Assembly: GCA_002269645.1 (NCBI GenBank)
Contig: NIVC01000742.1
Span: forward strand, 1-31,990
Direction of reading: 5' to 3'
Source of the DNA: Macrostomum lignano
Lineage: Eukaryota
Length of the DNA stretch: 31,990 bases
The position numbers and the translations under genes are program-made. Within the stretch, counting starts at the first letter, position 1. The number at the start of each line of letters is the position of its first letter. The notes beneath the pieces were generated by a model. That model had not been told where the DNA came from. It did no database searches and saw only the letters and a program-made list of their open reading frames with translations. Shown in pieces: positions 1 through 31,502 of the stretch.

Positions 1-3000
1 GTTGTGGTCGGCGTCGTGTCGTGTCGTCGACGTTGTTGTTGGAGTTGTTGATGTAGTCGTTGTTGTTAATGTTGTTGTTGGAGTAGTTATAGTCGTCGAA
101 CTGGTCGGTGTGGTGGTCGTTGTTGAAGTCGATGTCGTAGCACTTGTGTAGTTCTAGTGTAGTAGTTGATGTAGTAGTTGACGTCGTAGTCGTTGGCGCA
201 GTGCAAGTGCTCGGCAGTGGTTCGAAGCAACCCTCAATGGTGACGGAAAACCGGAAGTTTGTCGCAGCCGAATCATACACTTTACCAACTGAGGAGGCAA
301 TTCTCACTGCCGATATGTTGAATCCGATCGAGTAGCAAAGCGAGTCGGCCATGGCGTCGCCGGTGTTGTGAAAGATAGCTCAGAAAAGACCAGATTTCCA
401 GTGACGCTTCTTTTTAAGTGAAATGTTAGCTTGTTTGATGTTTCCGTACAGACAGATCTGAATTTTTTAATGGAAAAATGGAATTCTAAAGAAATTGCCT
501 AATAATTGTTTATTAACAATAGTTTTATTCAAAAAGCTCTACCCTTTCAATGTAGACTGGATTTGGTCGGCATTTCACGGCAGACAGATCGATATCCATA
601 AAACCAGAGGTGGACCTTAAAATGCTGTATCCATATGTGGGGTCAGACGAGACTCCGCTGATAGAGTAGGACGGGATGTAGGTACTGCTAGTCAGTCCAT
701 TGATCAGTGGGCAGACTGCAATAAAACAGGTACATACGTTTCCAATATTTCGTTTAGACCTTTGTTTTTAATTGCTCCTAATTACTTGAAAATTAGGCAA
801 AAAAGTAAGCATTGGACTTTTATGAGTCTAAATGTACCGTTTTGAAAGTTATTGAGAAATACTTAAAAATCAGAGTAGCTCGTAGTTATAGTAAATAATT
901 TTAGTCATTGATTTTTCATTCTGTAAGAATTGATGTTTTTCGTAATGCTGCTAGCTTGCTGTGAGTACCTGACTGGAGTAGCCTTTTGTGGCTCACTTTT
1001 TTATGGCTTGGTTGAATTCGTGAAATTCACTCTCTGGGTCAGTAAAGCTTTCTCCATCACATTCTCAACTCCATTTGTGATCATCTGTGGCGGGATGCCT
1101 GACTTGGTATTAGAATTTTGCCGCGCCGCTCATATGTGGCCCTGACGGCCTCTGAGGTGCTGTGTAGTAATGCCCCATTCTCCTTCTCGCTTAAATGTAA
1201 TGCTGCCAAATTTATTGTCTGAGAGGACTTCTACTTCTCGTATTGTGGTCCTTATTTCCAATTAACTTGTTGACAAGCAAGTTAACAAAGCAAGTTAACT
1301 TTTATAAACGATACACAAAGGATGCAGAATTCCCTGCGAGGTGTAGCTTAGAGGTGATACATTCCAATTTTGCTCCCCTCCATGTCCATGCAATGGTTTG
1401 ATTTTGCTTGCAGTCACATAGAGTCACATCGAATTTTTGTAAATCAGGGGTCGGAGAACGTCAGCTCGTGGGCAAAGCCTCTCTATCCGGCCCTCGGGTC
1501 CTTCAAAACTTCACAATTAGCAATCCGGCCCACTCAATGTATACATCTCTACCAGCGCTCTGCTCTCTAACCTTCTTTCTCCTCTCTCCTCTCTTCCTTC
1601 CGGCAGGAAAATTTTTCCACGGGAGGTTTTCCCACCGAGTCTTTCCTGCCGAGTTTTCCCCGCCGAGATTTTCCCGCAGCGAGGTTTTCCCGAAGAGGTT
1701 TACCAGTCTGAATTTCAAGTCCTATTGAAAATTGTTGACGCCCTGTTTTTATCTGTAGCAACATAAATCCTTCAAACTGATTTGTTAACTCTGCTGTGTA
1801 AAACAGAACTTCTACTTAGCAGAAGTTATATCTGTTTTAAATTTAGAAACTGTTTTAGAGCGCTTTGATACCACAGATCTGCAATGAACCATTCATTGTA
1901 GAACATGGCCAACCGAAGTAAAATGACGCGTTTCTTTGCAAATCGTACAAGTTGAAATGGGGGCCGATTTTCATTGCAAAATTCATTGGCGATATAAGGA
2001 GGTGTTCGCTTTTTAGTTCTAAAAAAATCCGAATAGCTCCCTTTCTGACAAGTAAACAAGTCGACATTTCCTGGGGTTCACTCACTCATAAATTAACAAG
2101 CTATTGTTTTATGAAATACTTACTAGGGGGGGGACTCGTCGGCAAGCAAAGTTACGGAGAAAATTTCACCTGTTTGTATTTCTAATGTATTGTTCTAGAC
2201 GGATTTTTCTCCTTGAACGAAACCACTCCCTGCTCGCTTAATTCCGAATTCGGAAATCCATAATATGAGATATTATGACTTTAGTGCTAAAATTAGTGAC
2301 AGCTTCTTATGTTGCTAATGCATTTTTGCAGAAAAAAACTGGTTTCCTATGAAATTTACATGATTTTCTAGTGTAACATCCTTCTACTTCAGCTGTCCAC
2401 GCCATGAGATACTTTATCTATACGTACATCTGGTCCAATATACATATATATCATTTTTAACATTAACACATTATATGCTTATCTCAGTAGTTATCTTCAG
2501 CCTAAAGATTATTTTGTAAATTTATCTGTTTTGCAGAGAGGGATAACCTTTTGGTAATCCCTCTTTAACCTTTTGGTTATTTTTGAGGAACAATCCTTTT
2601 GGTTCAGAAGGGATTACATAGAAGTTGGGTGCTAAAAAGGGCTTAAAAGTATTTAGTGCAGCTGGATAGACTAAGAGCAGAGACTAAATGAGGGTAGTGA
2701 AGAGATTTAACTACCCTCATAGAACTGCTGTAGTTCGGAGCCCCGAATTAAAACAATTGAAACCCATAAAAATCACATGGCTTCGAATGAAAAATGCTCA
2801 GCAGTATAAAACCTACTTGTTGGCTTAGGAGTCGTAGAAGTTGTCGTAGTGGTTGTTCCAGTGGTGCTCGTGGTCGGTGTGGCAGTCGTTTGCGTTGTGG
2901 ATGAAGAAGTTGTGCCAGTTGTAGTTGTCGCAGGTGTCGTCGTAGAAACTGTTGTTGGAGTTGATGTCGATATTGAAGTAGTTTGTGTAGATGCTGTCGT

Positions 3001-5966
3001 GCTGGTTGTAGTTGGAGTCGTTGATGTGGTGGATGTGGTTTTAGTAGACGTTGGTGTTGTTGGGGTAGTGGTAGTGCTTGTAGTTGTTGTTGGCGTTGTC
3101 AGACACACTGCGGAAAGCGGCAAGAAGCACGCGTTGATCGTGAGGTAGAACTGGTACTGGGTTTTGTTCGGTGCCGACGACTTGAACTCCAATGGAAAAA
3201 TTCCAATCTTGGCCGCAACTAGTTTAATGTCGTAGCACAGATCTCCAACATCGCTCGATACGGATGCTGATCTCGGCACGGGAACGAACGGTTTATCGAA
3301 TGTTTTCCCGTACAAAATGTTGGCCCGTTTTACAGTGCCACTGATACAGATCTGAAACGAGTTATTGTTAGGTGAAGAAATTTCTTAAATAAATATCATT
3401 TTTAAACCAAAGTCGTGAGAATTCGAATTTGTTGAATCGCTTGTAAAATATCAAACTCACTGTTTCGATTCGAATCGGGGCACGACAAGATCCAAGTACC
3501 AGGTCAATTTGCATGACGTCATTTTGGTGAACCAGCCAGCCGCGAAGCGGATCATTCGTCGCGTGATTCACGGCGGTGAGCGGAATATAGGAGTAGTCCG
3601 ACATGCCGTTCACAATGCGGCAGTCTAAAATGGTTATGTGCCAAAAAACATAAAAGTCAATGAAAAGCTAAAATAAGATAAACTTTCATATAGCGAAATT
3701 TGTTAAAAGTTTTCATTTTTAGACGTTTCTGCTCTCTTTCGAGCATATTGTATGCAGCTTAGTCATGCAATAAGTGAGGATTAGTTTTTTACTGATATTG
3801 AAAATATTAGTGCAGCAATTCTTACAAGTCGTAGTGGTAGGTGTCGTTACAGTGGTGGTTGTCGGTGTTGTGCTGGTTGTGGTTGAGGTTGTCCGAGTTG
3901 TTGTTGGCGTTGTCGGTGTCGTCGTCGTAGAAGTGGATGTTGTCGTGGTCGAAGTAGTGCTGGTGCTGCTGGTTGTGCTTGATGTGCTGGTAGTGCTGCT
4001 AGTAGTGGCTGTCGGTGTTGTCAGACAGGACACGTTTAAGTTGCTGAAGCAGCCATAGATCGATAAGAAGAAGTAGTAGGAACTTGCTGTCGTCTTGAAT
4101 AGCTGCGGTTCTACCTGAACACTGATGACATCTCTGTTTACATCAATGCACAGAATTTCTCCATCCTTTGCAGTGAGCGTAGCCGAGTCAGGGATCAGGT
4201 AGGGAATCACGTCTGTGTTGAATCGCACCAGAACAAATGCTTGAGCAACGTTTCCAGCTATGCAAACCTAAAATTTAGGTTAGTGTGATATTATAGTCAA
4301 TGATTGTGTCAGTTGGTAGAAGTGCTGCTTTTTCTTACTCTTAGAACCCGAGTTGCGGGACGACAGCCTCTCGACGAGATATCGACAATGACAGACGTTC
4401 TAGGCTGAAGTGTAAACGCTCCTGAGACTTGACGAGTGCTGTTACCGAATGTCGCAATGTCGATAGCGGGGATCATCGAAGGGTACAGCATACCATCGAC
4501 ACTGGGGCAATCTGTAGTTGAAAAGAGGCATTGAGATGCGCTATTTTCTTAAGGGGCCGGGACTAAAAGAGTTCTAATGAAAGTTATGTCTTAAAATTAA
4601 TATCTGTATCAGTTATAAATCATTAACTTTTGATAACTGATTTACTAACACTGAACTTACAAGTCGTAGTGGTAGGCGTCGTTGTTGTGGTGGTTGTCGG
4701 TGTTGTGCTGGTGGTTGTGGTGGATGTCGTCGGAGTTGTAGTGGGTGTTGTCGGCGTCGTTGTAGTAGTAGTAGATGTAGTCGTCGGGGTCGTAGTAGTG
4801 CTGGTAGTGGTAGTAGAAGTTGTAGTGCTTGTGGAGGTAGTTTGGCAGCTGTCATTAACCGGTGTGAAGCAGCCGTCGATGGTGAGGAATACCTGGTAGT
4901 TGGTGGCCGAGAGGGCTCCGGACTTCAGTGCGACTGGATAAAAGGCAAGCCGAGCCATCCTCGTATTCAGCTCATAGCACAGCCTGGCGCCAGTGACATC
5001 AGAAAACAGGGAGCTGGACGGCTCAAATGGGACGTAGCGGCTACTGGTGGTCGGCATGTACTGCACTACTGCTCGCATCACGTTTCCAGTCATGCACAGA
5101 GTGTTCACAAAAATTTCAGTAGTTCGACAGCCATCGACAATGAAGTCAAACTCCATCTGATCGTTGAAATTAATAAGAAAGCTGCCGGTGACTCCCGGCC
5201 GTCCACCAGAGATGGATTTGTCCGGGATGTAAGACTTCTGCGACAGACCGTTCACGTAGTCGCAGACTGAAGATTTTTTTTAAATTAGAATTTTTAGCCT
5301 ATTAGTATGAAAACCTTCTGCATCTAAACCTTAAAATTTGAGATTTAGGAGATCGATAACTCGAGAACGGGAGATTAGAGACGTCGAGACATCCTATGCA
5401 GGTCTCTCATGGGCTACCAGGGGATAAAAAGTCTATCAAGTAATGGATTTTTTTGTCCAGACCTTTACTTATAGGGCTCCATTCGAATGCTTCAGTTGAC
5501 ACCCGTCACGGCTCCTACAGGTACCTCCTACACCGTTGACGCAAACTTTTCAGGGCTTTTTGTCGAATCGCTAAATTACTCGTAATAAAAATTTATTTAG
5601 TTGCAAGAATATACAACAATAATGATCATGAATGATCAGCGGTGCCGCACTCACCTGGTGTGGTTGTCGGCAGCCGTGTTGTTGTAGTTGTAGTTGGCGT
5701 CGTAGTTGAAGTTGTCGTGGGCGTCGTTGTAGTGACCGTGGTGGTGGGAGTGGTTGGAGTTGGGGTGGTGAAGAAGTACTTGGTGGTGAGCGGCACGCAC
5801 GAGCAGAAGGGATCCGCTGTCGTTGTGAAGCCGGCAACCGGCAATGTCAGGACAGCTAGAAGGGCTGCCGCGGCAAATATTCCTGCTGAGAATAGAGTTA
5901 TAAAGTCATAGGATGCACGATTTAGTGCGTACTGAAACTAGTTCTTGTGGAAAGACTGCATTTCAT
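1..5966 (-). CDS. Gene B, 5' part: mucin-like protein with signal peptide and repeated [6-Cys discoidin-like domain + Thr/Ser/Pro tract]; continues beyond position 1
   Basis: Exons built by hand: 5966-5933, 5885-5655, 5266-4661, 4511-4339, 4267-3826, 3624-3461, 3351-2817, 715-543, 457-<1. All introns are GT..AG and phases are consistent (1,1,1,0,1,0,1,0). Domain starts: CDYVNGLSQKSYIP (5264), [14 protein letters not shown] (4509), CRIVNGMSDYSYIP (3622), CPLINGLTSSTYIP (713). The last exon carries apparent indels and an in-frame TGA at 382-380. Exon 1 is the least certain. Confidence 0.85.
1600..1700. repeat. Degenerate ~14-bp tandem repeat (TTTTCCCNNCGAG-like) in the 2.1-kb intron of gene B
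   Basis: ttttccacgggagg, ttttcccaccgag, ctttcctgccgag, ttttccccgccgag, ttttcccgcagcgagg, ttttcccgaagagg lie in tandem. Confidence 0.6.
4023..4514 (-). repeat. Dispersed duplicate, copy 1 (gene B module 2); partner at 31014-31505
   Basis: Ungapped alignment at offset 26991; about 9 mismatches in ~490 bp counted by eye. Confidence 0.97.
5830..5966 (-). other. Predicted signal peptide of gene B, split by a 47-nt intron (5932-5886)
   Basis: Spliced translation MKCSLSTRTSFTGIFAAAALLAVLTLPVAG|FTTTAD has a basic n-region, a hydrophobic h-region and a V-A-G cleavage context. The donor GTACGC is the same hexamer as the gene A donor at 24923. Confidence 0.75.
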
Positions 5967-7171
5967 AAATCAATATCTTTACGCTCAATTTTTCTTTTAA
6001 TACATGTACTGTACTCTTAGCTTTTCAACTCGACTTCTGTATTGCTATTAAATGTTTTTAAACGATGCCATCAAGCATAAGGGGACTTTCAATCAGACGA
6101 GCAAAGTCAAAACTTCGAGGTGTGTCAGCACTAATTGACGCTTGACTGCACCGCAGTCCCAATACAAACTTCGTATATTGCGCAAGAATTGGGTTGTACA
6201 AATTCAACACAACGTTCTAATGTGTCGGGGGGGGGTACACGGGACTACTCTTGAAGTCGTTAATATTCTCTTTCAATATTAACCACAAAGCAAAAAGCAA
6301 GCGCCCAACACGGGAATATACGAGCGTAGCGGTTCGAAATTCGATAACTTATCAGCTCGCAAAATTTGTGTGTACACTTTTCTATTCGCCCCACATTTTT
6401 TGCTTGCTACTTGTTAGTAGGCTGTCTGATGAACTGAAGGAACATCTGCGTCAAATGTTTAGTAGGTAGAGTTTATTAAGTTTCACTATTCGCATCTGGA
6501 ATGATATCCAAATTCCATATTCTATTTCCAGAAATCCATGGTAGAACTCCATATACCGACCTGCTTGTGAGGGCGGCGAGTTCGCAAGCTTAAAAAGCAT
6601 TTCGACGAGTTTATTGAGTGCAGGGACAGGAATGTTGGGGGTTGCCCGACTGGCGCCATGCCGGCTGGTACGCAACACCCCGCGCTCCTGTTGGGTGCCA
6701 TTAAAGATGCGAATGAATAGAGAACTTATCCGCCGCTCTTCCCTTTTTAAACATTTTCTGCATCTCAAGTTGCTAAAATCCAGTGTTTTTTATAAAGCGC
6801 ACTGAATGTGGGTCGTCGGCGTGCGTTTCTTCGAATCTTCCAAAAGCTTCTACGCCCACGGATTTTTTCTAAGACAATGCGAACTTTATATGGCTTGCAG
6901 GGTGGGGCTTTGTCGGTTTTTTTTACAAAAACGAAAGTTTTCTGCAATGGTAAATTTCTTAGAAATTTCTACAAATTTCTCAACTTCTCATCGTCAGCTT
7001 GTAAGGCAGGGGTTACGGGTTGCACCGTAGCCCTGCGCTGAGGCAGAAAGAAAAAAACTGCCATTGTGATCTTTTCCATTGGAGACCAAACTGCCACGTT
7101 TTAATGTGCTGCATGCATATGTCATAGAGAAGCATCTGCCGCGTTCAGTGGAACCATTTTTAGTATATGGA

Positions 7172-7227
7172 AATTTTTCTGAAATCTATCGCTTATATAC
7201 CTACCGACAGACAACTCATTTTTAGTA
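7172..7227 (+). repeat. Short interspersed repeat fragment shared with 21558-21625 (possible DINE-1/Helentron-like non-autonomous element)
   Basis: AATTTTTCTGAAATCTATCGC and GACAGACAACTCATTTTTAGTA occur in the same order at both sites. The family assignment is from recollected motif style only. Confidence 0.55.
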
Positions 7228-8243
7228 TATTGGAAGTTGCTTTGAAAAATCTGCATCTGTCCTGTTTTCTCACTGCTTCCATCTTTCAAGTGTCAAATCT
7301 TCTGACTTATGTTCTTAAACTAGCAGCTTGTTTTGGAGGGCCACGAATGCTAACGACAGAAGTAGTTGAAACAGAACCGTTAAATGCTGGCACATTTAAC
7401 AGCACCTACAACAATAAATACGAGTACTTGCTAAATACGCTCGTATGGGTAAATAGCGTGAGTAAAAATTATGTAATTACACTAAAACAAATTCGGTGGG
7501 AGTTTGCTCTGCCCTTAGCAGGTGAGGACAACGAGAAGCAGGAAGTTCTCAATGTTCGGACCGCGTTCCTTGTCATTGAGTGAAGCAACTGACCCAGACG
7601 TAAATTCTTGGCACTAATTGTCTGCAACCCGTGAGACTGGGCCTTTAAATAATTTAGCGATCCTTACCGATCAAAATTCTATGCACAGAATAACAGTGCC
7701 TCCAGCAACAAGCTTTACTGACAATAAGTAGTCAAAAATAGAAATTGCCTACCAAGCAGCGCAGATCGATCTGCGAGTGGCATCTCGGAGTTTGGCGCAG
7801 GGCCGTCTGGTGCAGTCAGCCCTTCGGAAAAGAGTCGCTGTGACTTGAATAAACGAACTGGGTGAAGGAATAACTTTTCTTCTTCTTGTCAAACCTGAAA
7901 TTCCTGCTCTCCCGACGAGTAGCAATTACTAAAGAATTTATGCAGCTACAGAAAAAGACTCGACAAGCTGCATAAGGCGCCGAATCCTACCAATCAAGCT
8001 AACCCTAGATCTATTGTCCCTTAAATCGGACAATAGAACTCCCCCCTTTACCTAAGCAGTGCACAATTAGCCTCGAAAAGAAAATTAAAGAGGGCAGAAT
8101 AGCGCCGAACTCAAGTTGAACAACTCTGACTGGGCTGGGCATGAGCCCAGGTGAATGAGAGACAGTAGTGAAATTCTCTCTAAGTTTACCAATGCAATCG
8201 CGCGACCCTACGAGCATATAGGGTACTAAAGTGTCTGGTTGGA

Positions 8244-8272
8244 TAGATAGATAGATAGATAGATAGATAGTA
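8244..8272. repeat. Short (GATA)n microsatellite
   Basis: Directly visible; followed by GCGAGCGAAGCGAGC. Confidence 0.9.
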
Positions 8273-8462
8273 GATAGCGAGAAAGAGCGAGCGAAGCGAG
8301 CTCTTTTGAGCTTGCTTGCCGCAGCCAATCACGCTGAAAGCACGCACACAAGATCACCGGAAACGATTAAGGCAGCTGGAAAGCCAATGGGCGCGGTAAG
8401 CGCTTTTATCCAGAGGAACTACCTACTGGAACCAGCCATGCCGAACGAAAATCAGACTACTA

Positions 8463-8815
<353 letters not shown>

Positions 8816-8820
8816 TTATT

Positions 8821-9110
8821 CGAGCTTTCCAGCGTCAATTTTAGCTTTCCCGCGCCAATTTTAGCTTTCCAGCGCCATTTTAGCTTTCCCGCGATAATTT
8901 TAGCTTTCCCGCGCCAATTTTAGCTTTCCTGCGCCATTTTAGCTTTCCCGCGTCAATTTTAGCTTTCCAGCGCTGGTTTGGGCCTATTGGCGCTGATTTC
9001 AGCGTTCCGGCGCTGATTTAGGGATCCTGGCGCTGATTTGGGGATCCTGGCGCCAAATTTGGCTTTCGGCGCCAATTCGAGCTTTTCGGCGCTGGTTTGG
9101 GCTTTTTAGG
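8821..9110. repeat. ~20-bp minisatellite (TTTAGCTTTCCCGCGCCAAT-like), ~14-15 units that diverge rightwards
   Basis: Directly visible units, e.g. tagctttcccgcgccaattt, tagctttccagcgccattt, later gggatcctggcgctgatttg. Confidence 0.85.
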
Positions 9111-9500
9111 CATGGCTTCAGGGATCAGCACTGATTTACATTCAATTGGCACTATAAAAATCAAAAGTGTCATTTTTTGACTTGTTATTGATTGTTGATT
9201 ACTTTGTTATTGATTATTTTTAGAGATGACTATTTGCTGAGAGTTGATTTTTTTAATTTATGCGACTCAGGATATACTGAATATCTACTACCTTGTTATT
9301 ATGACTGAGTTATGGTTTACTTTTACGATTTAATTGTGTAATGTCTTTGTCTTAATCTTTTACTCACTTGATGCACTGTTAGCGATGAGTTATGATGCCA
9401 ATTAGAATCGCCCATATCGCTTTTATCGCTTTTTATCACCTTAATCCAGGTCATTCAGTCATGCTACTCTCGTCCTACCTCCTCTCTGTATCTCTACCTA

Positions 9501-13199: not shown

Positions 13200-13460
13200 A
13201 GTCCCAAGGCTCTTTGCTGAATTTTGCAGACAAGTTTGTGGACAAGTCTGGCTTGAATTTATGGTTTGACTTGTTATTTTCTTCTACCGAAAACCGATTA
13301 AAGGCTTTCAAACATTTCGAAAAAAGGTGGCATATAAATTATGCGAAGACTACATGTATATTTACAAATTGTACATGTATACTCGTAGCTAAAGCAACTC
13401 GTCGTCAGAGGCTTCCCCTCACCAACCCCTCTGAGGGATATAAGCAAGTGCGTCTTATCA

Positions 13461-14185: not shown

Positions 14186-14361
14186 GATAAAAAATGAGCT
14201 TCTTAAAAAACATCAAACATTCTTTCGAACATTATATAAACTACACCTTAGTTGAATGGGTGGGGTTGGCCTATTCAAAGGCTTAATAAACTTCATAATG
14301 AAGATTTCCGTCTGCGAAAACTCTGATTCCTGCCCTCATGCGCCCCATCTCCTTCCCCCCT

Positions 14362-15973: not shown

Positions 15974-15977
15974 AAAG

Positions 15978-18655: not shown

Positions 18656-19044
<389 letters not shown>

Positions 19045-20644: not shown

Positions 20645-21196
20645 TTTTAATCAAACATCAAACAGCAAAGAAGAAAACCTTGCTCGCCTGCATGAAGCAG
20701 TACTTTAAATTCAAGGCTTTTGAAGCTAGGGACTAAAAGCTGAGTCCCGGCAGAACATAAATATAGAAAGAAGAATTGTGATTCCATTCCGGCACTATTT
20801 TCCCATTTGTCCTATTTTCAAACCCAAATTTCGGTGTCGCAGTTCGCTGTTTCTCTGCTTTCAGTAGCAAAAGGAAGAACGCAAAGGCTATTTTATAGAA
20901 GAAAGGCAGCTGGATGACCCGTAAAGAACTTGCTGTCGGTGGAGCAATAAAGAAAATTTTCATTCCAATTCGAAATTGAGCTGTGCTTAATAGTGAAGCT
21001 TCCATTCTCAATTGCTGGCTGTGGAAAAAGCTAAAGGTTTTACTTTCAATTTTGAAGCTGTGCATTCAGTTTTGACAAAAATGATTAACGCAAGCATATG
21101 TATGGAGATATAGCTTCGTTTTTAAAGTGTATACATCCTAAAAGGTGCAGCTAGTTTCTAGCGGCTTGCTTGTAACCAAGGTTAAGAAAGAACAAT

Positions 21197-21304
21197 CTAA
21201 ATCCCCACGCTGAGTCCCCAACCTGGTCCGTACGGCTCCTCAATCCGGTAGTTCGTCTTCAAGTTCAGTTCGTCCCTCAGGCGCCTGGTCTGCACAGCGT
21301 AGAC
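21197..21304 (-). other. Terminal coding exon of gene A (end of transmembrane helix and cytoplasmic tail)
   Basis: Acceptor AAACCTGCAG|GTC in phase 0; translation [35 protein letters not shown]. Too short to appear in the supplied ORF track. Confidence 0.8.
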
Positions 21305-24300
21305 CTGCAGGTTTTAGGAGGGTTTGTGCGGTTTTAGCGGACTTCCCATATCACCCAGTTGCTTAGGTAATAGCTTCCGCGAGCTTCTTCATGTAACAAG
21401 AACAACTTCATGTAACTAAAACAAGGATTTTAAGTTGTCCCCGACTGCTACTTAGTCGGTATATTTAACATTGAGCCATTTCTTAGCCAAGATGCATGTA
21501 CCGTGCCAGGAAAATTTCTGATCAAATGGTGCAAGTCTGAAGAAAATCGGTTGAGCCAATTTTTCTGAAATCTATCGCATAGCTAGATAGATAGATAGAT
21601 AGAGACAGACAACTCATTTTTAGTACTAGTCGGTATAAGCAAAGAAACACAGCTAATGGGCACAAGCGCTTGTGCAGTATTGCATACAGCAGCATTCAAG
21701 TCGCTTACGATGATAAAGATGACGAGGACAAGCAGGAAAAGTCCGCCAATTACTGCAACCAGAATGATCAGGATGGTGTAATCCTGCGACACGGCCTCAG
21801 GGCCACCGCTTGTGGCTGTGCCGGCACTGGCTGCCGCAGTCGTGGCCGCTGCCCGAGTGGTGGATTCGACGGCCGTTGTCGTTGAGCTGGTACTGGTGAG
21901 GCTTGTGACGGCTGTGAATTTAGGGAACCATTCGAAATTATTTCATATGGTATATACATGTCAAAGGCACAAAAAGCGCTTGCAATTTAAGCTGCTTTGC
22001 TCACCCGAAGATCCAATGTTATCGATGATGACACCACCCAGATCTGTTGCTTTCAAACCTTTTGTGAGAAGCTCGATAATAGAAGCTGCTGTGTTTGTAG
22101 ACGTGTCTCGAACCACAAGGTTTCCACTGATGACAACACTTCCCGACTTAAACTGTAAGTTTACTGCGTTTTGCAGTTCACCATAAAGCGAAGTTGACCT
22201 GGATGATTTCATAATGGTCTCAAAGGCGTAGTTAGCCAGCTGCTTGTAGCGCCAACTGTTCGGGTCTGCATAGTCATCGAACCACTGCAAATTTGAAAAG
22301 CGGAACGAGAACGGCACGGTCTTGACGTTCTTAAACACAGGCTGGTAGTTGGACGGACAGATGCAAGACGTCGTTGTGGGCGCAACAGTCGTAGTTGTAG
22401 TCGGAGTTGTAGTAGTGGTGGAAGTAGTCGTTGTTGTTGTGGTGCTTGTAGTTGGAGTAGTAGTGGTAGTAGTCGGAGTGGTTGTGGTAGTAGTCGGAGT
22501 GGTTGTTGTAGTAGTCGGAGTGGTTGTGGTAGTAGTCGGAGTGGTTGTGGTTGTAGTCGGAGTGGTTGTGGTTGTAGTCGGAGTGGTTGTTGTAGTAGTC
22601 GGAGTGGTTGTGGTAGTAGTCGGAGTGGTTGTGGTAGTAGTCGGAGTGGTTGTGGTAGTAGTCGGAGTGGTTGTAGTAGTAGTCGGAGTGGTTGTGGTAG
22701 TAGTCGGAGTGGTTGTGGTAGTAGTCGGAGTGGTTGTGGTAGTAGTCGGAGTGGTTGTGGTAGTAGTCGGAGTGGTTGTGGTAGTAGTCGGAGTGGTTGT
22801 GGTAGTAGTCGGAGTGGTTGTGGTAGTAGTCGGAGTGGTTGTGGTAGTAGTCGGAGTGGTTGTGGTAGTAGTCGGAGTGGTTGTGGTAGTAGTGGTTATT
22901 GATGTAGTCGTTGTCAAACACACTGCTGGAACTGTCGTGAAGCAGCCGTTGATGATGAGGTACATTTGGAAATTCGTGCTCGTTGCTGAAGCCGTCTTGA
23001 GTGTGCGCGGCAAAATTATGAACTGAGCTACTGGAAAGCCGATGTCGAAGCACAGATCCGCCGCAGTGTCTGAGGATACCAAGCTAGCAAGATTTTGGAA
23101 AGGTGCCGCATAGAACTGCTTGTATCGAATCGTAGCCTCTCTAACGTTTCCGGAGAGACACAACTAGAATTATGGCAGGGTAGAGCATTTAAGACCGATG
23201 CGTTCTCTGCACTGCTTAGAGAAATAAAGCTAAAAAAGCTTACCCTGTCAATATAAATTCCACTACGACAGTTATTAATGGTAAGATCCACAGTCAAATA
23301 TCCATCCGTACCGGTGCGAATATTGAAGCCAGTAGCATCACTGAAGCTGGTGGCCCCCGTGATATAGTCCATTGGCAGGAGCGATGAGTTCGACAGAGCG
23401 TTTACCATTGGACAGACTGAATAAACAATTTGCTTTTAGCCGTTAGCGTTCAGAATAAACAAACAATTTTGTCTTTACATAAAGGATAGTGCATTTGACT
23501 TACACGTGGTTCCCACAGTCGTAACGGTCGTGGGGGTTTTGGCAGTAGATGAACTGCTGGTCGTCGTGCTTGACGTGGTTGCGCTAGTGCTTGTCCTCGT
23601 GCTGGTCGTTGGAGTGCATCCCGGAATCGGCATGAAGCAGCCATACACCGACAGGAAGAAGTTGTAAGTGCTAGATCCGGTGGCTGCAGAAGACTTCAGT
23701 TCCTTCGGTGCGATGATGATAGAGCTCACGTTGAAGTTCAGGTCGTAGCACAGAAGTCCTGGACCGTCTTGAATAATAGTTGTGGACTGAACCAGTGGCA
23801 GGTATGACTGAGATGCCGATGTCTGGTAGATGAGGTCAGCTCTCTTTACATTACCGCCGATAAGGCAAACCTAAAAAGTGCAAGGATTTTTCGGTTACAG
23901 ATTGAATCGTGACGCGACTCTAATGACCAATTAAATCAATGCTACAGAGACTAATTGTACCTGTGTGATGTATTCTGGTCTGCGGCAGTTGTTGGATGTC
24001 AAATCGATGAAAAGTCCTTCGCCGGGTGCTCTAGACATTGTGTAGCCCAATACAGGAGAGAATGTTGCTCCACTGATGGCCCAGGAAGGCAGCAACGATG
24101 TATCAGCGATCGCATCGACAGCAGGACAAACTAAGAGAAATATTCAAGTTCAGTATACGATAACAAAAAGTTTTAAAAGAAATTAAGCCAAAGTACTTAC
24201 ATGTTGGCTTTGGTGTAGTAGTTGCTGTCGTAGTTGAACTTATTGTTGTCGATGTGGTGGAAGCTGTTGAAGTAGTTGGTGTTGTTGTTGCAGTTGACTT

Positions 24301-27300
24301 TGTTGTCTCCGTTGTGGAAGCAATTGGTGTTGTAGTTGTGGAAGATGTTGGCAGTGTAGTAGTTTTCGTCGTTGTTGGTGTAGTTGTAGTTGTAGAACTT
24401 GTTGATGGTGTCAATGTGCTTGAAGTTGTAGTAGAGGTCGAAGTTGTTGGAGATGTAGTCGATGTGCTGGTTGTTGGAGTCGTCGTTGTGGGTGTTGTAG
24501 TCGTACTCGTTGTTGTTGAAGTCGTGGTTGAAGTTGTCGTTGGAGTAGTAGTTGTGGTGGTAGTCGTTGGAGTCGTGAGGCAGGCGCTTGTTAGAGGCGT
24601 GAAGCAGGCATCGACTCTAACAAAGAAATTGAACATACTGTCGGTCGAGAACGATTTGAGTCGCAGAGGCACAATTGCTATTTTAGCTACAGTCTCTTTG
24701 TTGAGAACTGTGTAGCACCACGGACTCGTAGTGTCAACTGAGATGCTCGAAGCAGACAAATCAGGTGAGTACTTTTCAGTGCTTAATCTTGCAAACAGCA
24801 AGTTGGCTTCTCGCACGTTACCAATCAGACAAATCTGAAAGAATAAGCGGACATTCCAGTGTATGGAAACATGTGAGGAAAATATAGTTCAAGACACGTC
24901 ATAAATGACATACAAACGCGTACCCTATCAACGACTATTGGCGGCCGACATGAGTTTACAGTCAGATCAATCTCAAGGCTTCCGTTCTTCAGAGGAAGTC
25001 TGTAGCCATAGAATGGGTCGTATTCTCCACCAGTTACAGCGAATGAAGGAATCAAGTTGGACTGGTAGAAGCCGTCAATAGCGCAAGACGTTGTGGTTTC
25101 CAGTGTTGTGGTCAGAGTAGTTCTTGTTGTCGTCGATGTCGTAGTGCTGGTCGTTGGAGTCGTCGTAGTGGTAGATGTAGTCGGTGTAGTTGTAGTAGTG
25201 CTTGTTGTAACAGTAGTCGGCGTGGTCGGCGTTGTAGTAGTTGTAGTCGTGCTGGTAGTGCTGGTGCTGGTCGTTGTGGTCGGCGTGGTCAGACACGTGG
25301 AGTTAAGAGGATTGATGCAGGCCATGAGAGACACGAAGAACTGGTACTCGGTTGAGTTGTAGCCAGGCTTTGTAGCTTGAGGAACAATCATTAGTTCAGA
25401 GGTGAGTCTATTAAGATCATAGCACAGAGGATCTCCAGTTGAAGAAGTCTTTCCTGGCGTGTTGAAGTCGGGTACCAGTTTGTCGCTGGTTGGCTCTCGG
25501 ATCAAGATTTGTGCATTGAACACGTTTCCAGCGATGCACAGCTGCAATCACGATCGTTGACGATTAGTTAGATTAATGTTATATACGAGCGTAGTTACTA
25601 AGCGAGTAAGCATATCCATGTCGAAAACAGGAATACAACATCTAAACTTTACCCTTGAAATCACAGCAGCGGGTCGGCAGCCAAAGACAGTAAGATCGAT
25701 TTTCAATGCGGCTTTGAGGGGAAGAATGTATCCAAAAAGCTCTCTGTATGTGCCACCAGTGACTGCGAATGATGGCAGCAAGTCCGAACGACTGAAGGCA
25801 TCAACGAGGCATGCTGAAAATCAAGTAGTCAGTTTTAAAAATGATTAATCGCATTTTGTAAGCTGGGTTTCCAAAGAAACTCGAGAACAAAAACTAAAAT
25901 GTTTCTTTTTAAACGTTGTTTTAACTTACAAGTAGTAGTAGTCGGGGTTGTTATTGTAGTTGTTGGAGTCGTCGTCACAGTCGTGGTGGGCGTAGTTGTA
26001 GTTCTAGTAGTGGTAGGTGTAGTTGTTGTAGTGGAAGTCGAAGAGGTGCTTGTCGATGTTGGCGTTGTTGTAGTTGTAGATGACGTTGGTAGAGTAGTTG
26101 GCGTTGTGGTTGTTGGCGTTGTGGTTGTTGGAGTTGTTGTAGGAGTTGTTGTTGGCGTTGTAGTTGTTGAAGTTGTGGTCGGTTTTGTTGTGCTTGTTGT
26201 TGTGCTTGTAGTGGGAGTTGTGGTACTTGTGGTAGTAGTAGTGGCTGTAGTCGTTGTGGTTGTGGTTGTTGGTGTTGTTTGGCATGTGTCGTTAAGCGGC
26301 AAGAAGCAAGCTTGTATAGTCAAGAAAAACTGATAGTTCACTGCAGGAGCTTGAAGAGCAGTAGGCTTGACTTGGAGCTCGACCATGTCGATGTTCAAAT
26401 TGTAGCACAGTTGAGAACTACTAGTTTCATAGTTTATTGAGTCGGCGAAGATAACCGGATAGTCGGAATATGTTCTTCGATAAACCACGTTTGATCTTTT
26501 TACATTTCCTCCTATCAAGCAAACCTGAAATGTTCCAAGCGTTTTAAACGGAGTATCTGAAGACAAAATTCTCGTAGTCTATAGTAAGCACACTGCTTAG
26601 CTGGTAAAACTACTACATCATTCGTAACAAAACTCAGAAACAAAAAATATTCAAATAGTTTTACGTGATAAACTGTTTAGGTTTGCTCTCAACACTAACT
26701 GTCGAACAAAAACTATAAGAGTTAAAGTACTAAATAGTACTTTATACTAATTGCTTAATAGTACTACGAGGGTGTTCAAAACGTCTTAGGACGTTTTCTC
26801 ATTACTGTTGGGCTGCGCCCTTCCAGTGCTTGTGTACTTTGTCTTGTTTTCATTTTTTCATGCCGCCCCGCCCCGTCCCCCGTCTCGCGCCCGGGCCAGG
26901 GTTTGTGAGAGGCGTAAGCCTCAACCCTGGCCTAGCCCTTTCTGCACCCAGCCCCCGGCCCAACTTCTGTCCAATCTGGTTGCTGACCCTACCCCCTCCC
27001 TCTTTGCCCGCCTCACCCTAGGGCTGCTCGTATTGGCTGGCTGGCTGATAAGCCGGCTGGGCCCCAGGGTTTGGCTCGCCCTCTCCATTCTGCCCACCCC
27101 TCCCCTTTTCTGTGTAAATATTATGTAAAGGCTAGCCCTGAGCGGGCTGCGCTCCACGCTTTTCGTTCTTTCTGATTTTTCCGTTCTTCGGCGTACCTCT
27201 GCCCTTTGCGTACCAATAACTGCTTCGTGCCAATAACTGCTTTTTGCCAATAAACGTTCCGCCAATTCTAACGCCTTGTTAATAAGTCGATACATCAAGA

Positions 27301-30300
27301 AGAGGTGAGCGCGTGCTTTCTTCTTTCGGGTTGCCGCGTGGGGCCGGATCTGTAGGGACCTGGGACCGGTGAACACTCGCTGATCCCAGGGTGGTCGGTC
27401 CGGCGAACTCTCGCCGAACCGAGCGAGGCGGTCGTCGGAGTAGCCAGGGAGGGCTGGGACCGGGGTGTCTCAGGCGGGAGGGCCCGAACCATGACCCGTC
27501 CAGCGGCCATTAGGCCGAGACACAACATTACTCTTTTTAACAGTCAGCAATAGTACTCCTTGCTTGGCACATCTTTCGTTTCTCTGTAATATACGTACCT
27601 GATAAACAGTCAAGGCTCCCCGGCATCCACGAGCTGTGAGGTCAATCGCTATGTATCCACCGCTGGAAACTGGAATGTTCCAGCCAGTAGCGCCGTCAAA
27701 CGTCGCACCAGTGATCGTAAATTGCGGCAAGTACACAGGACTCGATAAACCATTAACGACGGGACAAACTGTAATGACAACGTGAAAATGTCTTATTTAT
27801 TAAGTTATTAATACACTACTTCTCGAATACAGCTCTCAATGACAATTGAGCACTTAAAAGAATCATGTAACGATCTTATTTACTTGTTGTGGGCACTGTT
27901 GTAGTACTTGTACTTGTCAGAGTAGTTGTAGTGGTAGTGGTCGACGTTGTCGGCGTAGTTGTTGTGGTTGTTGTGGGTGTTGTAGTTGTTGTAGTGGTCG
28001 TTGTTGTCGGAGTTGTCAAGCAGGTATTATTCAAAGGTGTGAAGCAAGCCTTGATTGTGATGTAAGCTCGAAATGCCGTGTCGGAGCTGAAAGCGCTCTT
28101 CAACTGTTGCGGTGAGATGCGCACACCAGTGAGCATCATTCCTGTAGGCGGAGTGAAGCACAACGGATCGGAAACCCCAGTAGCTGACTGGCTTGCAGAC
28201 GGAAGATTCGGACTGAATGGTCCTCCGTATGTAGTTTGATACAGGATGTAGGAACTCTGAATGTTTCCTAGTAGACAAATCTGCAAAAACCGTTGTGTGG
28301 TACACAATGGGTATTGTCTAGTGGTATGTCTGAAATGTATTAGCAAAGTGTCACGTTGTAACGAAATTCCTGCTCAATACTCACGCTCTCAACAGTAATT
28401 GGCATGCGGCAGCCAAACACGGAGATGTCCACTGTCATTGTGTAGGTACCACCAGTTCGAATCATGTACCCTGAAGCAGTGTAATTGGCTCCACTGACTG
28501 CAAATGATGGAATAAAGCGCTCATCCGACAAGCCATCAACTGCACATGAAGGCGTAGTTGTAGTAGCAGTGGTCGTTGTGCTCGTCGTCGTGCTCGTCGT
28601 TGATGTCGACGTGGTGGGTGTAGTTGTCGCTGTTGATGTTGTCGTCGGTGTAGTCGCAGTCGTTGTTGTGCTCGTCGAAGTGGTTGGTGTTGAAGTTGTC
28701 GTTGAGGTAGTCGTCGTAGTACACGATACTGGCAGAGGAGTGAAACAGGCCTCGATGGAAAGGAAAAACTGATACAACGAATCGCCTGAGGCTGCGCTTT
28801 TAAACTCTTTCGGAACAATTCTCAGCTCGGAAATGGGAAGCATTGGGTAGTAGCACAGCGGTGTAGCAGTGTCACTTGTATTGTACAGCGACTGCTCGAA
28901 GAAGTCCCAGTAGAGGGTGGAGCCTTGACGGATGATAAGATCAGCTCGTTTTACATTACCGCCGAACAGACAAATCTAAAACGGAACGCATCTGATTTTA
29001 GCATTTGAAATTGCTATTTTATTTAAATATCAAGAAAAGAACAAGTTACATACCCTATTAATTAGGATCGGTGTGCGGCAACCGGATACAGAAATGTCCA
29101 CATAGACGCCTTCCACTGAGCCTCTGGTACATTATATCCTGTTAACGGATTATAACTAGGAGCATTGATAGAAGAACTAGGAATCAAGACGCCGTTGAGT
29201 CCGTTCACCAAACAGGATGTTGTTGTCGACGGAGTGGTTGTAGTAGTGTGCTAGTTGCTGTTGTGGTCGATGTCGGCGTTGTGCTAGTAGTTGTGGGAGT
29301 TGTTGTTGTGGATGAAGTAGTCGACGTTGTAGAAGTCGTCGTTGTCGACGTCGTTACAGGTTGAGTTTGACAGGCTGTAGTTAGAGGCGCGAAACAGCCC
29401 TCAAGGCTCAGGAAGAATAAATAATTCGTTTCCAGCGACGAGCTGTTCAGTAGTGCGACTGGCGTGATTGCAATGCTAGATATGTTTGCCCCGAGAGTTA
29501 TGCAAAGAGGAGTCAACGAAGACGAGACAGATACCAAATTGGATTCCAAGACAAGATCGAACCGACCGGTCGGATAAGTCGTCTGGGTAGACACCGTTAC
29601 CTGCCTTACATTTCCTGTCACACAAACTCTCGTTAGGTATGTAGGAACAGGATTACATCCTCCAGCAGTCAAATCTATGATAAGATCTCGTCTCGGACTC
29701 ACTGGCATCTCGTATCGACCAGTTACATAAGTGGCGCCGGTAATGGCCCAATCAGGTATGTACTTTCTATCACTAAGGCCATTGAGTGCTGGACAAATTG
29801 TAGGCTTGACAGTAGTTGTAGACGTTGTTGTCGTTGACGTTGTCGTAGGAGTTGTAGTTGTGCTGGTAGTTGTAGGTGTTGTAGTGGTTGTTGAAGTAGT
29901 CGTCGGTGTTGTGGTAGTGCTACTAGTTGTAGTAGGCGTTGTAGTTGTGCTTGTAGTACTCGAAGTTGGAGTGGTTGAAGTGGTAGATGTAGATGTTGAA
30001 GTGGAGGTTGTTGGTGCGACTGTGGTAGACGTCGTCGTTGGAGTTGTAGTGGTAGTAGGAGTAGTCGATGTCGATGTTGTTGGTGTAGTTGTGGTTGACG
30101 TCGTCGTGGGTGTCGTTGTCGTTGACGTCGTCGTGGGTGTCGTTGTTGTGGTGGTGGTTGTTGTAGTAGTCGTAGTAGTGAGACAGCTGGCATTTAAGGC
30201 AGTGAAGCAGCCGTAGATATTCATATAAAATGTGAAATCTGATCCTGTTCCAGGAGTCATTGTCTGTGGCATCAGCTGCAAACCGGTGATGTCTCTGTTC

Positions 30301-31502
30301 ACTTGAAGACAAAGCAGCCCGTTTCACCCGTAACGGATGCAGGGAAAAGCACAAGCCTAGAATCCAGATTGTTCTGTACTGAAATCAGAGTCGTTTGCAC
30401 ATTTCCACCGAGACAGACGCTAAAAATTCGAATTGGCGCACGACATCCGCGAGCAGAGATATCCACCACAATAGAACCAAGTGGTTGAACAACGAATGCT
30501 CCTGCTCGATTAATAGATGCCCCAGAAATGTCTTGATCTGGTATAAACTGCGCGCTTGTCATTCCGTCGACCACAGGACAGTCTAAAAATCATATTTTTA
30601 CAGACAAATGATGATTATAACAAAAAACAATAAAATGAAACGAAAGGGTTAGATTTCTATTACTACTAATTCTTACAGGTCGTAGGTGTAGTTGTAGTAG
30701 TAGAAGTTGTTGTCGGTGTCGTCGGAGTAGTGCTTGTCGTTGTGCTGGTTGTCGTTGAAGTAGTTGAAGGCGTGGTTGTAGCTGTACTGGTTGTTGTAGG
30801 AGTTGTAGGGGTTGTTGTTGTTCTTTTGTTGTTGTTGATGTTGTTGTGCTTGTTGTGCTTGAAGTTGGTGTTGTCGTCGGTGTAGTGGTTGTTGGGGTCG
30901 ATGTCGTCGGTGTTGTTGTAGTCGATGTCGTTGGTGTTGTTGTGGTTGATGTTGTTGTTGAGGTTGTGGGAGTAGTTGTAGTTGACGTTGTTGATGTCGT
31001 CGTAGTCGTTGTAAGACAGGACGCGTTTAAGTTGCTGAAGCAGCCATAGATCGATAAGAAGAAGTAGTAGGAACTTGCTGTCGTCTTTAATAGCTGCGGT
31101 TCTACCTGAACACTGATGACATCTCTGTTTACATCAATGCACAGAATTTCTCCTTCCTTTGCAGTGAGCGTAGCCGAGTCAGGGATCAGGTAGGGAATCA
31201 CGTCTGTGTTGAATCGCACCAGAACAAATGCTTGAGCAACGTTTCCAGCTATGCAAACCTAAAATTTAGGTTAGTGTGATATTATAGTCAATGATTGTGT
31301 CAGTTGGCAGAAATGCTGCTTTTTCTTACTCTTAGAACCCGAGTTGCGGGACGACAGCCTCTCGACGAGATGTCGACAATGACAGACGTTCTTTGCTGAA
31401 GTGTAAACGCTCCTGAGACTTGACGAGTGCTGTTACCGAATGTCGCAATGTCGATAGCGGGGATCATCGAAGGGTACAGCATACCATCGACGCTGGGGCA
31501 AT
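21197..31502 (-). CDS. Gene A, 3' part: very large type I membrane mucin, >=10 x [6-Cys discoidin-like domain + Thr/Ser/Pro tract], then SEA, transmembrane helix and short cytoplasmic tail
   Basis: Exons built by hand: 31502-31330, 31258-30677, 30582-29054, 28975-28385, 28280-27884, 27768-27599, 26524-25930, 25813-25653, 25541-24924, 24834-24201, 24130-23961, 23870-23504, 23416-23244, 23163-22005, 21911-21709, 21304-21197. All are GT..AG. The total is 7630 nt and gives 2544 codons once four single-base gaps (~30825, ~30320, ~29248, ~29128) are restored. TAG stop at 21199-21197. The 5' end lies outside the window. Confidence 0.9.
21558..21625 (+). repeat. Second copy of the 7172-7227 interspersed repeat, with a short (GATA)n inside, in the last intron of gene A
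   Basis: Same two flanking blocks as at 7172-7227. Confidence 0.6.
21709..21774 (-). other. Transmembrane helix of gene A
   Basis: [22 protein letters not shown], continuing VYAV after the splice, followed by basic stop-transfer residues TRRLR. Confidence 0.92.
22010..22325 (-). other. SEA domain with autoproteolysis motif FKSG^SVVI (GSVV at 22143-22132)
   Basis: [30 protein letters not shown]...[16 protein letters not shown] fits the SEA pattern (F.f.....w...l.dp.S..y..L...GSVV) and sits membrane-proximal as in MUC1/MUC3-type mucins. Confidence 0.9.
22455..22892 (-). repeat. Near-perfect 21-bp coding tandem repeat encoding (PTTTTTT)n, ~20-21 copies
   Basis: Unit CCGACTACTACCACAACCACT on the minus strand; directly visible. 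Confidence 0.97.
26806..27527 (+). mobile_element. Solo LTR (722 bp) in a gene A intron
   Basis: Termini TGTTG...CAACA form a perfect 5-bp inverted repeat. A 4-bp target-site duplication TTAC lies at 26802-26805 and 27528-27531. AATAAA at 27249 suggests plus orientation. It is a GC-rich block in an AT-rich intron. Confidence 0.85.

Follow-up and report, generated by a model that had tools for sequence, protein, structure and literature searches.

We analysed a stretch of 31,990 nucleotides from the flatworm Macrostomum lignano, a free-living species (contig NIVC01000742.1 of assembly GCA_002269645.1, positions 1 to 31,990), referred to here as the window, and found that it probably contains two tandem, head-to-tail copies of one large gene for a type-I membrane glycoprotein with discoidin-fold modules, a SEA domain and a transmembrane segment, a reading to which we assign a probability of roughly 80%. 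Both copies lie on the minus strand and both are cut by the window edges; window coordinates refer to the whole stretch. We designate as gene A the copy carrying modules D1-D10 (31502 to 21197) and as gene B the copy carrying modules B1-B4 (5931 to 1). Thr-rich reading frames occurred exclusively on the minus strand in a six-frame translation of the window, which has a GC content of 33-61% (1-kb windows), contains long microsatellites and is devoid of long prokaryote-style open reading frames (ORFs). The exon order (Table 1) bears out the head-to-tail arrangement that had been noted in an initial annotation of this DNA.

Fourteen copies of the module were assembled, D1-D10 from 31502 to ~22900 and B1-B4 from 5266 to 1. 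The copies are 135-144 amino acids long and have a median pairwise identity of 31%; in their alignment, six Cys positions are invariant and a G-N pair, part of a G-N-V motif, is near-invariant. Each copy consists of an N-terminal half of ~57 amino acids (C-P-x-V-[DN]-G-[LM]...[YLI]-[IL]-P...I-[ST]-G...[IV]-D-[LI]...G-C-R-x(7)) and a C-terminal half of ~85 amino acids (x-C-[LI]-x-G-N-V...L-C-[YF]...P...L-K...Y-x-F-[FY]-L-x-I-x-[GA]-C-F-x-P-L-x(3)-C), which runs straight into a Thr/Ser/Pro tract. The two halves are contiguous in D3 and B1, which fixes how they are joined in the other copies. A profile built from 13 window copies retrieved 21 relatives with E-values down to 4e-192 in an exhaustive search of 1.8 billion representative proteins, and by this sequence measure the module repeats far beyond chance. 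The spacer that follows every module is 37-184 amino acids long and consists of 51-83% Thr and of 81-98% Thr, Ser and Pro taken together; across the 15 tabulated tracts, the stalk between the SEA domain and the transmembrane segment included, Thr amounts to 69% overall. In the last spacer, Tandem Repeats Finder identified a 21-bp unit repeated 21 times with 97% matches (22448-22893), which encodes (PTTTTTT)n. The initial annotation's count of at least 14 globular domains and its description of Thr/Ser/Pro spacers between them were thus both confirmed.

The exon structure is regular, with canonical GT-AG borders in every intron and conserved intron positions and phases. Apart from D3 and B1, 11 of the 12 copies are interrupted by a mid-domain intron with a phase-0 GT donor (AGA|GTAAGA, AGC|GTGAGT, CAG|GTACGT) located nine or ten codons past a conserved Cys-Arg (CRxxxxxxR); the remaining copy, D2, has no mid-domain intron and shows a 1-bp frame break. 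The exons encoding C-terminal halves start at a YAG acceptor exactly one codon ahead of the next conserved Cys (CLxGNV). Spacer exons finish with N|GTAAG or GTAGG, a donor of phase 1, and the next exon opens with YAG|NN-TG[CT], two bases before the first Cys; this phase-1 YAG|NN-TGY start was found in ten exons encoding N-terminal halves. The conservation of ~28 regular splice sites in copies with a median identity of only 31% is strong evidence that the exons are real and have been maintained for a long time. Database gene models use exactly the junctions that we deduced, as seen in the NCBI protein PAA49141.1 and the UniProt entry A0A1I8FZS0. Two introns are unusually long, namely ~1.07 kb (26525-27598, within D6) and ~2.1 kb (716-2814, between B3 and B4), the others being ~50-200 nt in length. 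Both long introns contain ORF-like repeat fragments, which gave no Pfam match.

The best relatives of the module come from M. lignano itself. Cluster look-ups identified A0A1I8G2V1, A0A1I8HA14 ("Membrane-associated protein"), A0A1I8FZS0, A0A1I8FZY4, A0A1I8IX78 and others carrying automatic names, and PAA49141.1 is listed at NCBI as hypothetical protein BOX15_Mlig023086g3. Two of these proteins are almost identical to modules of the window, A0A1I8FZS0 to B3-B4 and PAA49141.1 to D4-D5. The most informative of these paralogs is A0A1I8HA14 (1617 amino acids), which reads from a Met through a hydrophobic, signal-like N-terminus, the motif PFCSCVPLTTKYFF, Thr tracts with 11 matches to the domain profile, and a long Thr tract to a SEA-like region, a transmembrane segment and a tail. 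A word-indexed protein search, conducted either with the 13-copy alignment or with the N-terminus of gene B together with B1, gave no match; this reflects a limit of the index, since identical segments exist in UniProt.

At the 3' end of gene A, Pfam detected a SEA domain (PF01390) with 38 bits compared to a cut-off of 26.4 (E = 2e-9). The sequence FKSG-SVVIS is located ~58 residues into this domain, and its GSVV occupies what we take, from the MUC1 sequence, to be the position at which mucin SEA domains cleave themselves; paralogs carry GSVK or GSVA instead. The domain is followed by a 44-residue stalk rich in Ser, Thr and Ala, a hydrophobic transmembrane stretch of 23 residues and a tail exon of 35 amino acids. 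It is 56% identical to the SEA-like region of A0A1I8HA14, and the tail matches that of the same paralog, VYAVYSRRMRSDLKQK, weakly (47% over 19 amino acids, E = 0.05). A phmmer search of the PDB with the SEA region alone did not match any solved SEA structure, so that the assignment rests on Pfam, and a protein search with the region alone retrieved just one M. lignano protein. The initial annotation had described gene A as ending in SEA, transmembrane segment and tail, and had likened the layout to that of MUC1/3/12/17. We confirmed the order of these elements, and the combination of Thr tracts, a SEA domain with GSVV, a transmembrane segment and a tail indeed amounts to a membrane mucin-like architecture.

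In the same annotation, genes A and B were described as two head-to-tail paralogs. A reading of them as two different complete genes was not borne out by the sister contig NIVC01003964.1 of the same assembly (L001 in the following), which encodes PAA49141.1. L001 aligns to window positions 6280-1 at 98% and then directly to positions 31538-27587 at 93-97%, that is, it carries gene B (98% identical) followed by D1-D5 (97%). On L001, the spacer exon of B4 ends in ACC-T|GTGAGT, a 120-nt GT-AG intron of phase 1 follows, and the D1 exon starts with CAG|AT-TGC-CCC, the junction being in phase. In addition, the best matches of A0A1I8HA14 in the window are collinear with this order: B1, B3, B4, D1/B2, D5, D6, D7, D9, D10, SEA and transmembrane segment. 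From the join on L001 and the collinearity of the paralog, we conclude that the complete gene comprises a signal sequence, the short Cys motif PFCSCVPLTTKYFF, B1-B4, D1-D10, SEA, transmembrane segment and tail. The complete product of this single gene type has ~3,500 amino acids, the 14 modules being the full set of one gene. In the window, the 3' two-thirds of one copy are accordingly separated by ~15 kb of repeats from the 5' third of the copy that comes next.

One pair of modules differs from all others in its similarity. B2 and D1 share ~97% of their amino acids and 88% of their DNA including the spacer (window 3827-4514 compared to 30801-31505), whereas all other pairs of copies are 23-44% identical. 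As A0A1I8HA14 contains no equivalent of B2, this module seems to have arisen by a recent internal duplication of D1. We also observed that D1 of the window is closer to B2 of L001 (97.4%) than to D1 of L001 (93.1%), a possible sign of gene conversion between the two positions. A crossover between B2 and D1 that deleted B3-B4 was considered as the origin of the window D1 and found to be unsupported, as no B1-type exon is present within 490 bp upstream.

To place the module structurally, we modelled D3 with AlphaFold2, using the 13 window copies as alignment. The resulting all-beta model (predicted local distance difference test, pLDDT, 87.8; predicted template modelling score, pTM, 0.83) was compared to the PDB with Foldseek and matched IFT25, HSPB11, CBM29, the b1 domain of NRP2, FVIII and CBM32 with template modelling (TM) scores of 0.45-0.59, a best E-value of 5e-4 and a probability of 1.0. 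The model thereby places D3 among the galactose-binding-domain-like jelly rolls. The metagenome protein P0011, a distant single-domain member of the family (E = 2e-11 to the window profile), was modelled with a pLDDT of 85.1, and its top 50 Foldseek matches are almost all true discoidin/CBM32 domains, among them NRP1 b1, FVIII C2, FV, DDR2 and CASPR2 (TM scores of 0.6-0.68, root-mean-square deviation of 3.4-3.7 Å, E ~1e-6, 66 matches at E <= 1e-3). In a wider alignment, the first Cys is kept in every copy whose aligned segment reaches the start of the domain, and the Cys of an ACF motif near the C-terminus is kept in 18 of 18 sequences including the distant ones; these are presumably the positions of the terminal disulfide of discoidin domains.

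Sequence comparisons count against this assignment. No Pfam match for the module was obtained with three window copies (E <= 1) or with ten homologous proteins, the PF00754 model included, and sequence searches of the PDB remained empty with one domain, with the 13-copy profile and with an 18-sequence wider profile. An hhalign comparison of the family profile with one true discoidin domain, that of the metagenome protein P0026, yielded the expected register with a probability of 1%, which is not significant; a phmmer search with the P0026 domain found too few PDB sequences for a discoidin profile. The flatworm branch furthermore possesses two extra Cys pairs and lacks the RP...GW segment that the distant members keep. 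Relative to PF00754/CBM32, the module shares the beta-sandwich fold seen with Foldseek, a Cys at the start and another near the end, and by eye a common motif pattern (C-x-x-x-G-M...I-P...I-x-x-S; ...DL...V-x-x-V-x-x-G), whereas it is undetected by the Pfam model or by PDB sequence search and has the additional Cys pairs. Judged from the structural models, it is a divergent discoidin-fold domain that is not a member of PF00754 by the sequence test of that family. The description of the domains as discoidin-like in the initial annotation consequently stands for the fold and not for the sequence.

Distant relatives were found in the chiton Liolophura sinensis (XP_064614628.1, "mucin-2-like") and among metagenome proteins (P0010-P0021 and P0026). 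XP_064614628.1 contains seven copies (E = 6e-29 against the whole library), and in this protein as well as in P0019 the module copies alternate with Thr/Pro-rich linkers. Neither a SEA domain nor a transmembrane segment was seen in the chiton and metagenome relatives. Some of the distant relatives carry TIL and VWC domains and one a true F5_F8_type_C domain, a context resembling gel-forming mucins or hemocytin. The latter domain was observed in P0026 (4511 amino acids), where residues 171-455 comprise a Pfam-significant F5/8 type C domain and, directly after it, a module copy, in addition to TIL, VWC and Thr-rich linkers. On a 107-kb eukaryotic contig (ENA ERZ25069853 ctg28616l, positions 1-20507), distant domain copies of 143-168 amino acids are each encoded by a single exon and occur every 2-5 kb on one strand; they look like parts of one large multi-domain gene that was annotated as a series of individual small proteins. 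Taken together, the distant relatives point to a broader, unnamed branch of the discoidin superfamily that is associated with mucins.

In the profile search, relatives were confined to flatworm, chiton and metagenome proteins, and no orthology signal to vertebrate MUC1/MUC3-cluster genes was obtained. Literature searches on Macrostomum mucins and on discoidin- and mucin-like proteins of flatworms yielded no paper on the family. The family is already contained in UniProt and NCBI, only as fragmented, unnamed predictions. The initial annotation had not recognised a described family in these genes, and this is supported in that neither a Pfam match nor a paper was found, and needs to be qualified in that the predicted proteins are already deposited without a name. 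The domain family is absent from Pfam, occurs in at least two spiralian phyla and is confidently modelled, and it deserves a name.

The initial annotation also had gene B begin with a signal peptide. Its first exon reads YALNRASYDFITLFSAGIFAAAALLAVLTLPVAG|FTTTADPFCSCVPLTTKYFF and continues into a Thr tract; it contains the hydrophobic stretch FITLFSAGIFAAAALLAVLTLPVAG, and the hydrophobic region has a V-A-G site at -3/-1. The motif PFCSCVPLTTKYFF of gene B is 93% identical to the segment just past the signal peptide of A0A1I8HA14, in which a Met and a signal-like N-terminus precede the PFCSC motif. The signal-like exon is thus present, yet its start codon is absent from the genome: the exon has no in-frame ATG, and the frame opens at TTTCAG|TAC directly after a TAG. 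A good acceptor, TTTCAG|, precedes the exon, whose first base coincides with a codon boundary. The spliced leader of M. lignano, CGGTCTCTTACTGCGAAGACTCAATTTATTGCATG, ends in ATG, and ~30% of the genes of this species are trans-spliced (PMC8629364). The initiator ATG of gene B would in this scheme be supplied by the spliced leader, which may be the source of its start codon. Observations on L001 speak against this possibility. A 1-bp deletion after the putative trans-splice acceptor puts the spliced-leader ATG out of frame there, and the NCBI gene model on L001 extends upstream beyond the signal exon by more than 1.3 kb, so that an ordinary upstream exon may carry the start codon.

The integrity of the two copies needs to be considered, as both could be decaying pseudogenes whose frameshifts are real and which yield no full-length protein or only an N-terminal secreted fragment ending at about D4. 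This would be compatible with at least four 1-bp frame breaks in gene A (in the D1 spacer, D2, the end of the D3 spacer and the N-terminal half of D4; Table 1), with about eight 1-bp differences of B4 from its intact sister copy, and with the missing in-frame ATG of gene B. The break in D4 (~29130; L001 ~9700) speaks against an intact gene, since it is the sole break common to the window and L001; the NCBI annotation splits L001 at this break, and PAA49141.1 starts at an internal Met in D4. This shared break may reflect a genuine lesion or a consensus error of systematic nature, or else indicate skipping of D4. The pN/pS ratio (nonsynonymous to synonymous differences) between the contigs in clean exon stretches is 0.6, with 16 differences in 3,114 sites being too few to judge selection. 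However, a base-by-base alignment of the window with L001 revealed 100 substitutions and 43 indel events over ~9.5 kb, the indels being mostly 1 bp long, often located in short single-base runs and found in introns and exons alike. An indel rate similar to the substitution rate that also affects introns is the signature of long-read consensus errors. All breaks except that in D4 are private to one contig: L001 is broken in the D2 spacer and D3, where the window is intact, and the window is broken in D2 and B4, both of which read without interruption in L001 and the UniProt models. Such private 1-bp breaks in each contig, introns included, fit consensus errors better than decay. UniProt models derived from another assembly read straight through B4, substitutions have caused no premature stop, all ~28 splice sites are intact, and the six Cys and GNV are kept across copies of 31% identity. 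We therefore regard pseudogenes as unlikely. An in-frame TGA in B4 was evaluated as a nonsense mutation and rejected, because flanking 1-bp indels put the stretch out of frame and L001 and UniProt read through it in another frame. The current M. lignano gene models for these genes are fragmented and frame-shifted.

The arrangement of the copies allows for other interpretations as well. Genes A and B could be two distinct complete genes, namely a mucin of ten domains with SEA and transmembrane segment, its start lying just upstream of the window, and a second gene with a signal peptide and at least four domains. The structure 5' of D1 in the window copy is what weighs against a single gene type here, as positions 31581-31990 show no similarity to L001 and are unique, AT-rich and non-coding, unlike the short B4-D1 intron of L001; the window copy could therefore differ in structure. 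On the other hand, the D1 exon starts in phase 1 at an internal acceptor and thus requires a coding exon upstream, and a spliced-leader ATG would be out of frame at this site. The phase-1 donor of the B4 spacer exon fits the D1 acceptor, and L001 and the paralog model both put B-type domains directly upstream of D1 within one gene, which makes two distinct genes improbable. We judge it similarly improbable that the tandem is an artefact of assembly, in which two haplotigs of a single gene or a collapsed repeat were joined such that the 3' part precedes the 5' part. Assemblies of M. lignano are redundant and repeat-rich, and work on them describes de-duplication (PMC8629364); moreover, the junction region is dense in microsatellites and satellites. 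Yet L001 also carries window positions 6395-7234 at the corresponding place upstream of its own gene B, the divergence of D1 and B2 and the unique flanks are sufficient for separate loci, and genes for membrane mucins are commonly found in tandem clusters (PMC9578598). Two tandem copies of one gene type thus remain the reading that we prefer.

The proposed protein can be compared with several known systems. Its closest known counterparts are the vertebrate SEA-type mucins MUC1, MUC3A/B, MUC12, MUC13 and MUC17; like these, it would combine a signal peptide, Thr/Ser/Pro tracts, a juxtamembrane SEA domain with G|SVV(V/I), a single transmembrane segment and a short tail. In contrast to the Pro/Thr/Ser (PTS) region of these mucins, which is one uninterrupted and usually single-exon tandem repeat, that of the flatworm protein is cut 14 times by the module and distributed over more than 20 exons. 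MUC16 (CA125) is a membrane mucin in which a folded module alternates with O-glycosylated linkers like beads on a string, as is well established; its bead is the SEA domain itself, present many times, whereas the bead of the flatworm protein is the discoidin-fold module and SEA occurs once. The CysD domains of MUC2, MUC5AC and MUC5B are, again by established knowledge, small disulfide-rich globular domains that break PTS tracts. They differ from the flatworm module in their fold (the module gave no match to Pfam Mucin2_WxxW) and belong to secreted polymers with VWD domains and without SEA or transmembrane segment. Given that MUC16 carries SEA modules and MUC2, MUC5AC and MUC5B carry CysD domains, folded modules between PTS tracts have precedents in mucins; the initial annotation had stated their absence for MUC1/3/12/17. 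The genes for vertebrate SEA-type mucins are likewise found in head-to-tail clusters (PMC9578598). These mucins share the SEA domain alone with the flatworm protein, and no evidence of orthology was obtained. As SEA-type membrane mucins are reported to have arisen in vertebrates (PMC9578598), the flatworm protein is most simply seen as a parallel assembly of the same parts.

With regard to function, the Thr tracts would be densely O-glycosylated and act as stiff rods, keeping the modules at a distance from each other on a filament that extends from the cell surface, thereby forming a glycocalyx. Such a filament could reach a length of several hundred nanometres and carry one folded module per 40-180 residues. 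During folding, the SEA domain would cleave itself at G|S, the halves being held together non-covalently, and the ectodomain could be shed under force as in SEA-type mucins of vertebrates. The ligands of discoidin and CBM32 domains are galactose-type sugars, head groups of phospholipids, collagen or C-terminal Arg peptides. By analogy, the discoidin-like modules would bind a ligand via their loop face, a glycan being most likely in the context of a mucin and a lipid or matrix protein the alternative. The proposal of glycosylated rods and a filament draws on what is established for mucins and SEA domains (PMC9578598).

Membrane mucins are known from textbooks as vertebrate molecules. The gene cluster described here shows the logic of a membrane mucin, with PTS rods, a SEA breakpoint, a transmembrane segment and a tail, in a free-living flatworm, the rods being broken by a module with discoidin/CBM32 fold. 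Provided that the modules bind glycans, the protein would combine the roles of glycocalyx scaffold and multivalent lectin, which is relevant to the way in which ciliated marine animals with soft bodies build their surface coat, attach and handle microbes. More speculatively, and with considerable doubt on our side, the module could be an old, unnamed branch of the discoidin superfamily specialised for mucins, the beads serving as lectins that read or cross-link the mucin O-glycans of the animal itself or microbial glycans, and sheddable SEA-anchored mucins could have originated on two or more occasions, or at an earlier time than assumed so far. Should this apply, mucus and glycocalyx proteins of flatworms, chitons and other invertebrates would share repeats of bead and Thr-rich linker, and SEA-anchored mucins would not be a vertebrate invention. 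As M. lignano is a tractable model, direct testing is possible.

Table 1. Coding exons of the two gene copies and the block between them (window coordinates).
Feature	Position	Strand	Evidence and remarks
Gene A
D1 N-terminal half exon (CPSVDGM...CRPATRVLR)	31330..31502	-	acceptor GCAG|AT-TGC, phase-0 donor AGA|GTAAGA; homologous to L001 7499-7670; gene runs on upstream past the window
D1 C-terminal half and 113-aa Thr-rich spacer	30677..31258	-	acceptor TTTTAG|GTT-TGC, donor T|GTAAGA; 1-bp frame break near 30830 (D1 spacer)
Single long exon: D2, spacer, D3 (no intron), spacer, D4 N-terminal half	29054..30582	-	acceptor TTTTAG|AC-TGT, donor AGG|GTATGT after CRTPILINR; 1-bp breaks near 30325 (D2), 29250 (end of D3 spacer) and 29130 (D4 N-terminal half)
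D4 C-terminal half, spacer, D5 N-terminal half	28385..28975	-	PAA49141.1 (L001) spliced exactly at the terminal donor, mid-D5
D5 C-terminal half and spacer	27884..28280	-	acceptor TTGCAG|ATT-TGT, donor A|GTAAAT
D6 N-terminal half exon	27599..27768	-	splice sites
D6 C-terminal half and 117-aa spacer	25900..26524	-	3' boundary approximate; preceded by the ~1.07-kb intron
D7 N-terminal half exon	25653..25813	-	splice sites
D7 C-terminal half, spacer, D8 N-terminal half	24924..25541	-	reading frame and splice sites
D8 C-terminal half and 126-aa spacer	24190..24834	-	3' boundary approximate
D9 N-terminal half exon	23961..24130	-	splice sites
D9 C-terminal half and 37-aa spacer	23500..23870	-	3' boundary approximate; donor ACG-T|GTAAGT
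D10 N-terminal half exon	23244..23416	-	splice sites
D10 C-terminal half, 184-aa spacer, SEA	22005..23163	-	SEA ~22365-22006; GSVV 22143-22132; donor TCG-G|GTGAGC
Ser/Thr/Ala-rich stalk and transmembrane helix	21709..21911	-	54% identity to transmembrane region of A0A1I8HA14; donor ATC|GTAAGC
Cytoplasmic tail exon, 35 aa, then stop	21197..21304	-	acceptor CCTGCAG|GTC
Between the copies
Intergenic block: microsatellites, satellites, transposon fragments	5932..21196	.	repeat and Pfam scans
Gene B
First coding exon: hydrophobic signal-like stretch, PFCSCVPLTTKYFF motif, Thr tract	5655..5931	-	starts TTTCAG|TAC just after in-frame TAG; no ATG; donor CCA-G|GTGAAT
B1 (no intron) and spacer	4650..5266	-	3' boundary approximate; donor ACT-T|GTAAGT
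B2 N-terminal half exon, near-copy of D1	4339..4511	-	splice sites, comparison with D1
B2 C-terminal half and spacer	3790..4267	-	3' boundary approximate
B3 N-terminal half exon	3461..3624	-	splice sites
B3 C-terminal half and 96-aa spacer	2815..3351	-	3' boundary approximate; donor ACA-A|GTAGGT; junction PKPT-I-CPLINGL also in A0A1I8FZS0
B4 N-terminal half exon	543..715	-	splice sites
B4 C-terminal half and spacer, running off the window	1..457	-	about eight 1-bp indels compared to the intact L001 copy (L001 6868-7398) and A0A1I8FZS0

The block between the two copies contains remains of mobile elements and several kinds of repeats. On the plus strand, positions 16124-18654 hold a fragment of a long terminal repeat (LTR) retrotransposon with a gag zinc knuckle, an aspartyl protease, a reverse transcriptase (RT) and an RT-RNase H (Pfam). 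It is likely Ty3/gypsy-like, is frame-shifted between its ORFs and lacks an integrase; a (GATA)97 microsatellite at 18656-19044 truncates it. An RNase H fragment (PF00075) on the minus strand at 14475-15158, beside Ser/Pro-rich ORFs, is probably a piece of a second, non-LTR element. A GC-rich region (~61%) at 9692-10753 on the plus strand contains a 354-residue open frame with no Pfam match, and its composition is unlike that of the rest of the window. An (ATAG)88 microsatellite at 8463-8816 and the (GATA)97 microsatellite mentioned above are built from the same unit and flank a transposon and satellite block of ~10 kb between the mucin copies. We further identified a 48-bp satellite of ~15 copies (13457-14187) and a (CTCA)160 microsatellite (20007-20644). 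A 22-bp satellite, AGAAGCGTCATGTAAAAATAAA, forms two arrays of opposite orientation (10853-11516 and 11656-13199), the arms of which are up to 221 nt long, 94-99% complementary and foldback-like; the ORFs flanking these arrays (FCFDIRIHMQA and FCFDTRIHMQA) are likewise inverted copies.

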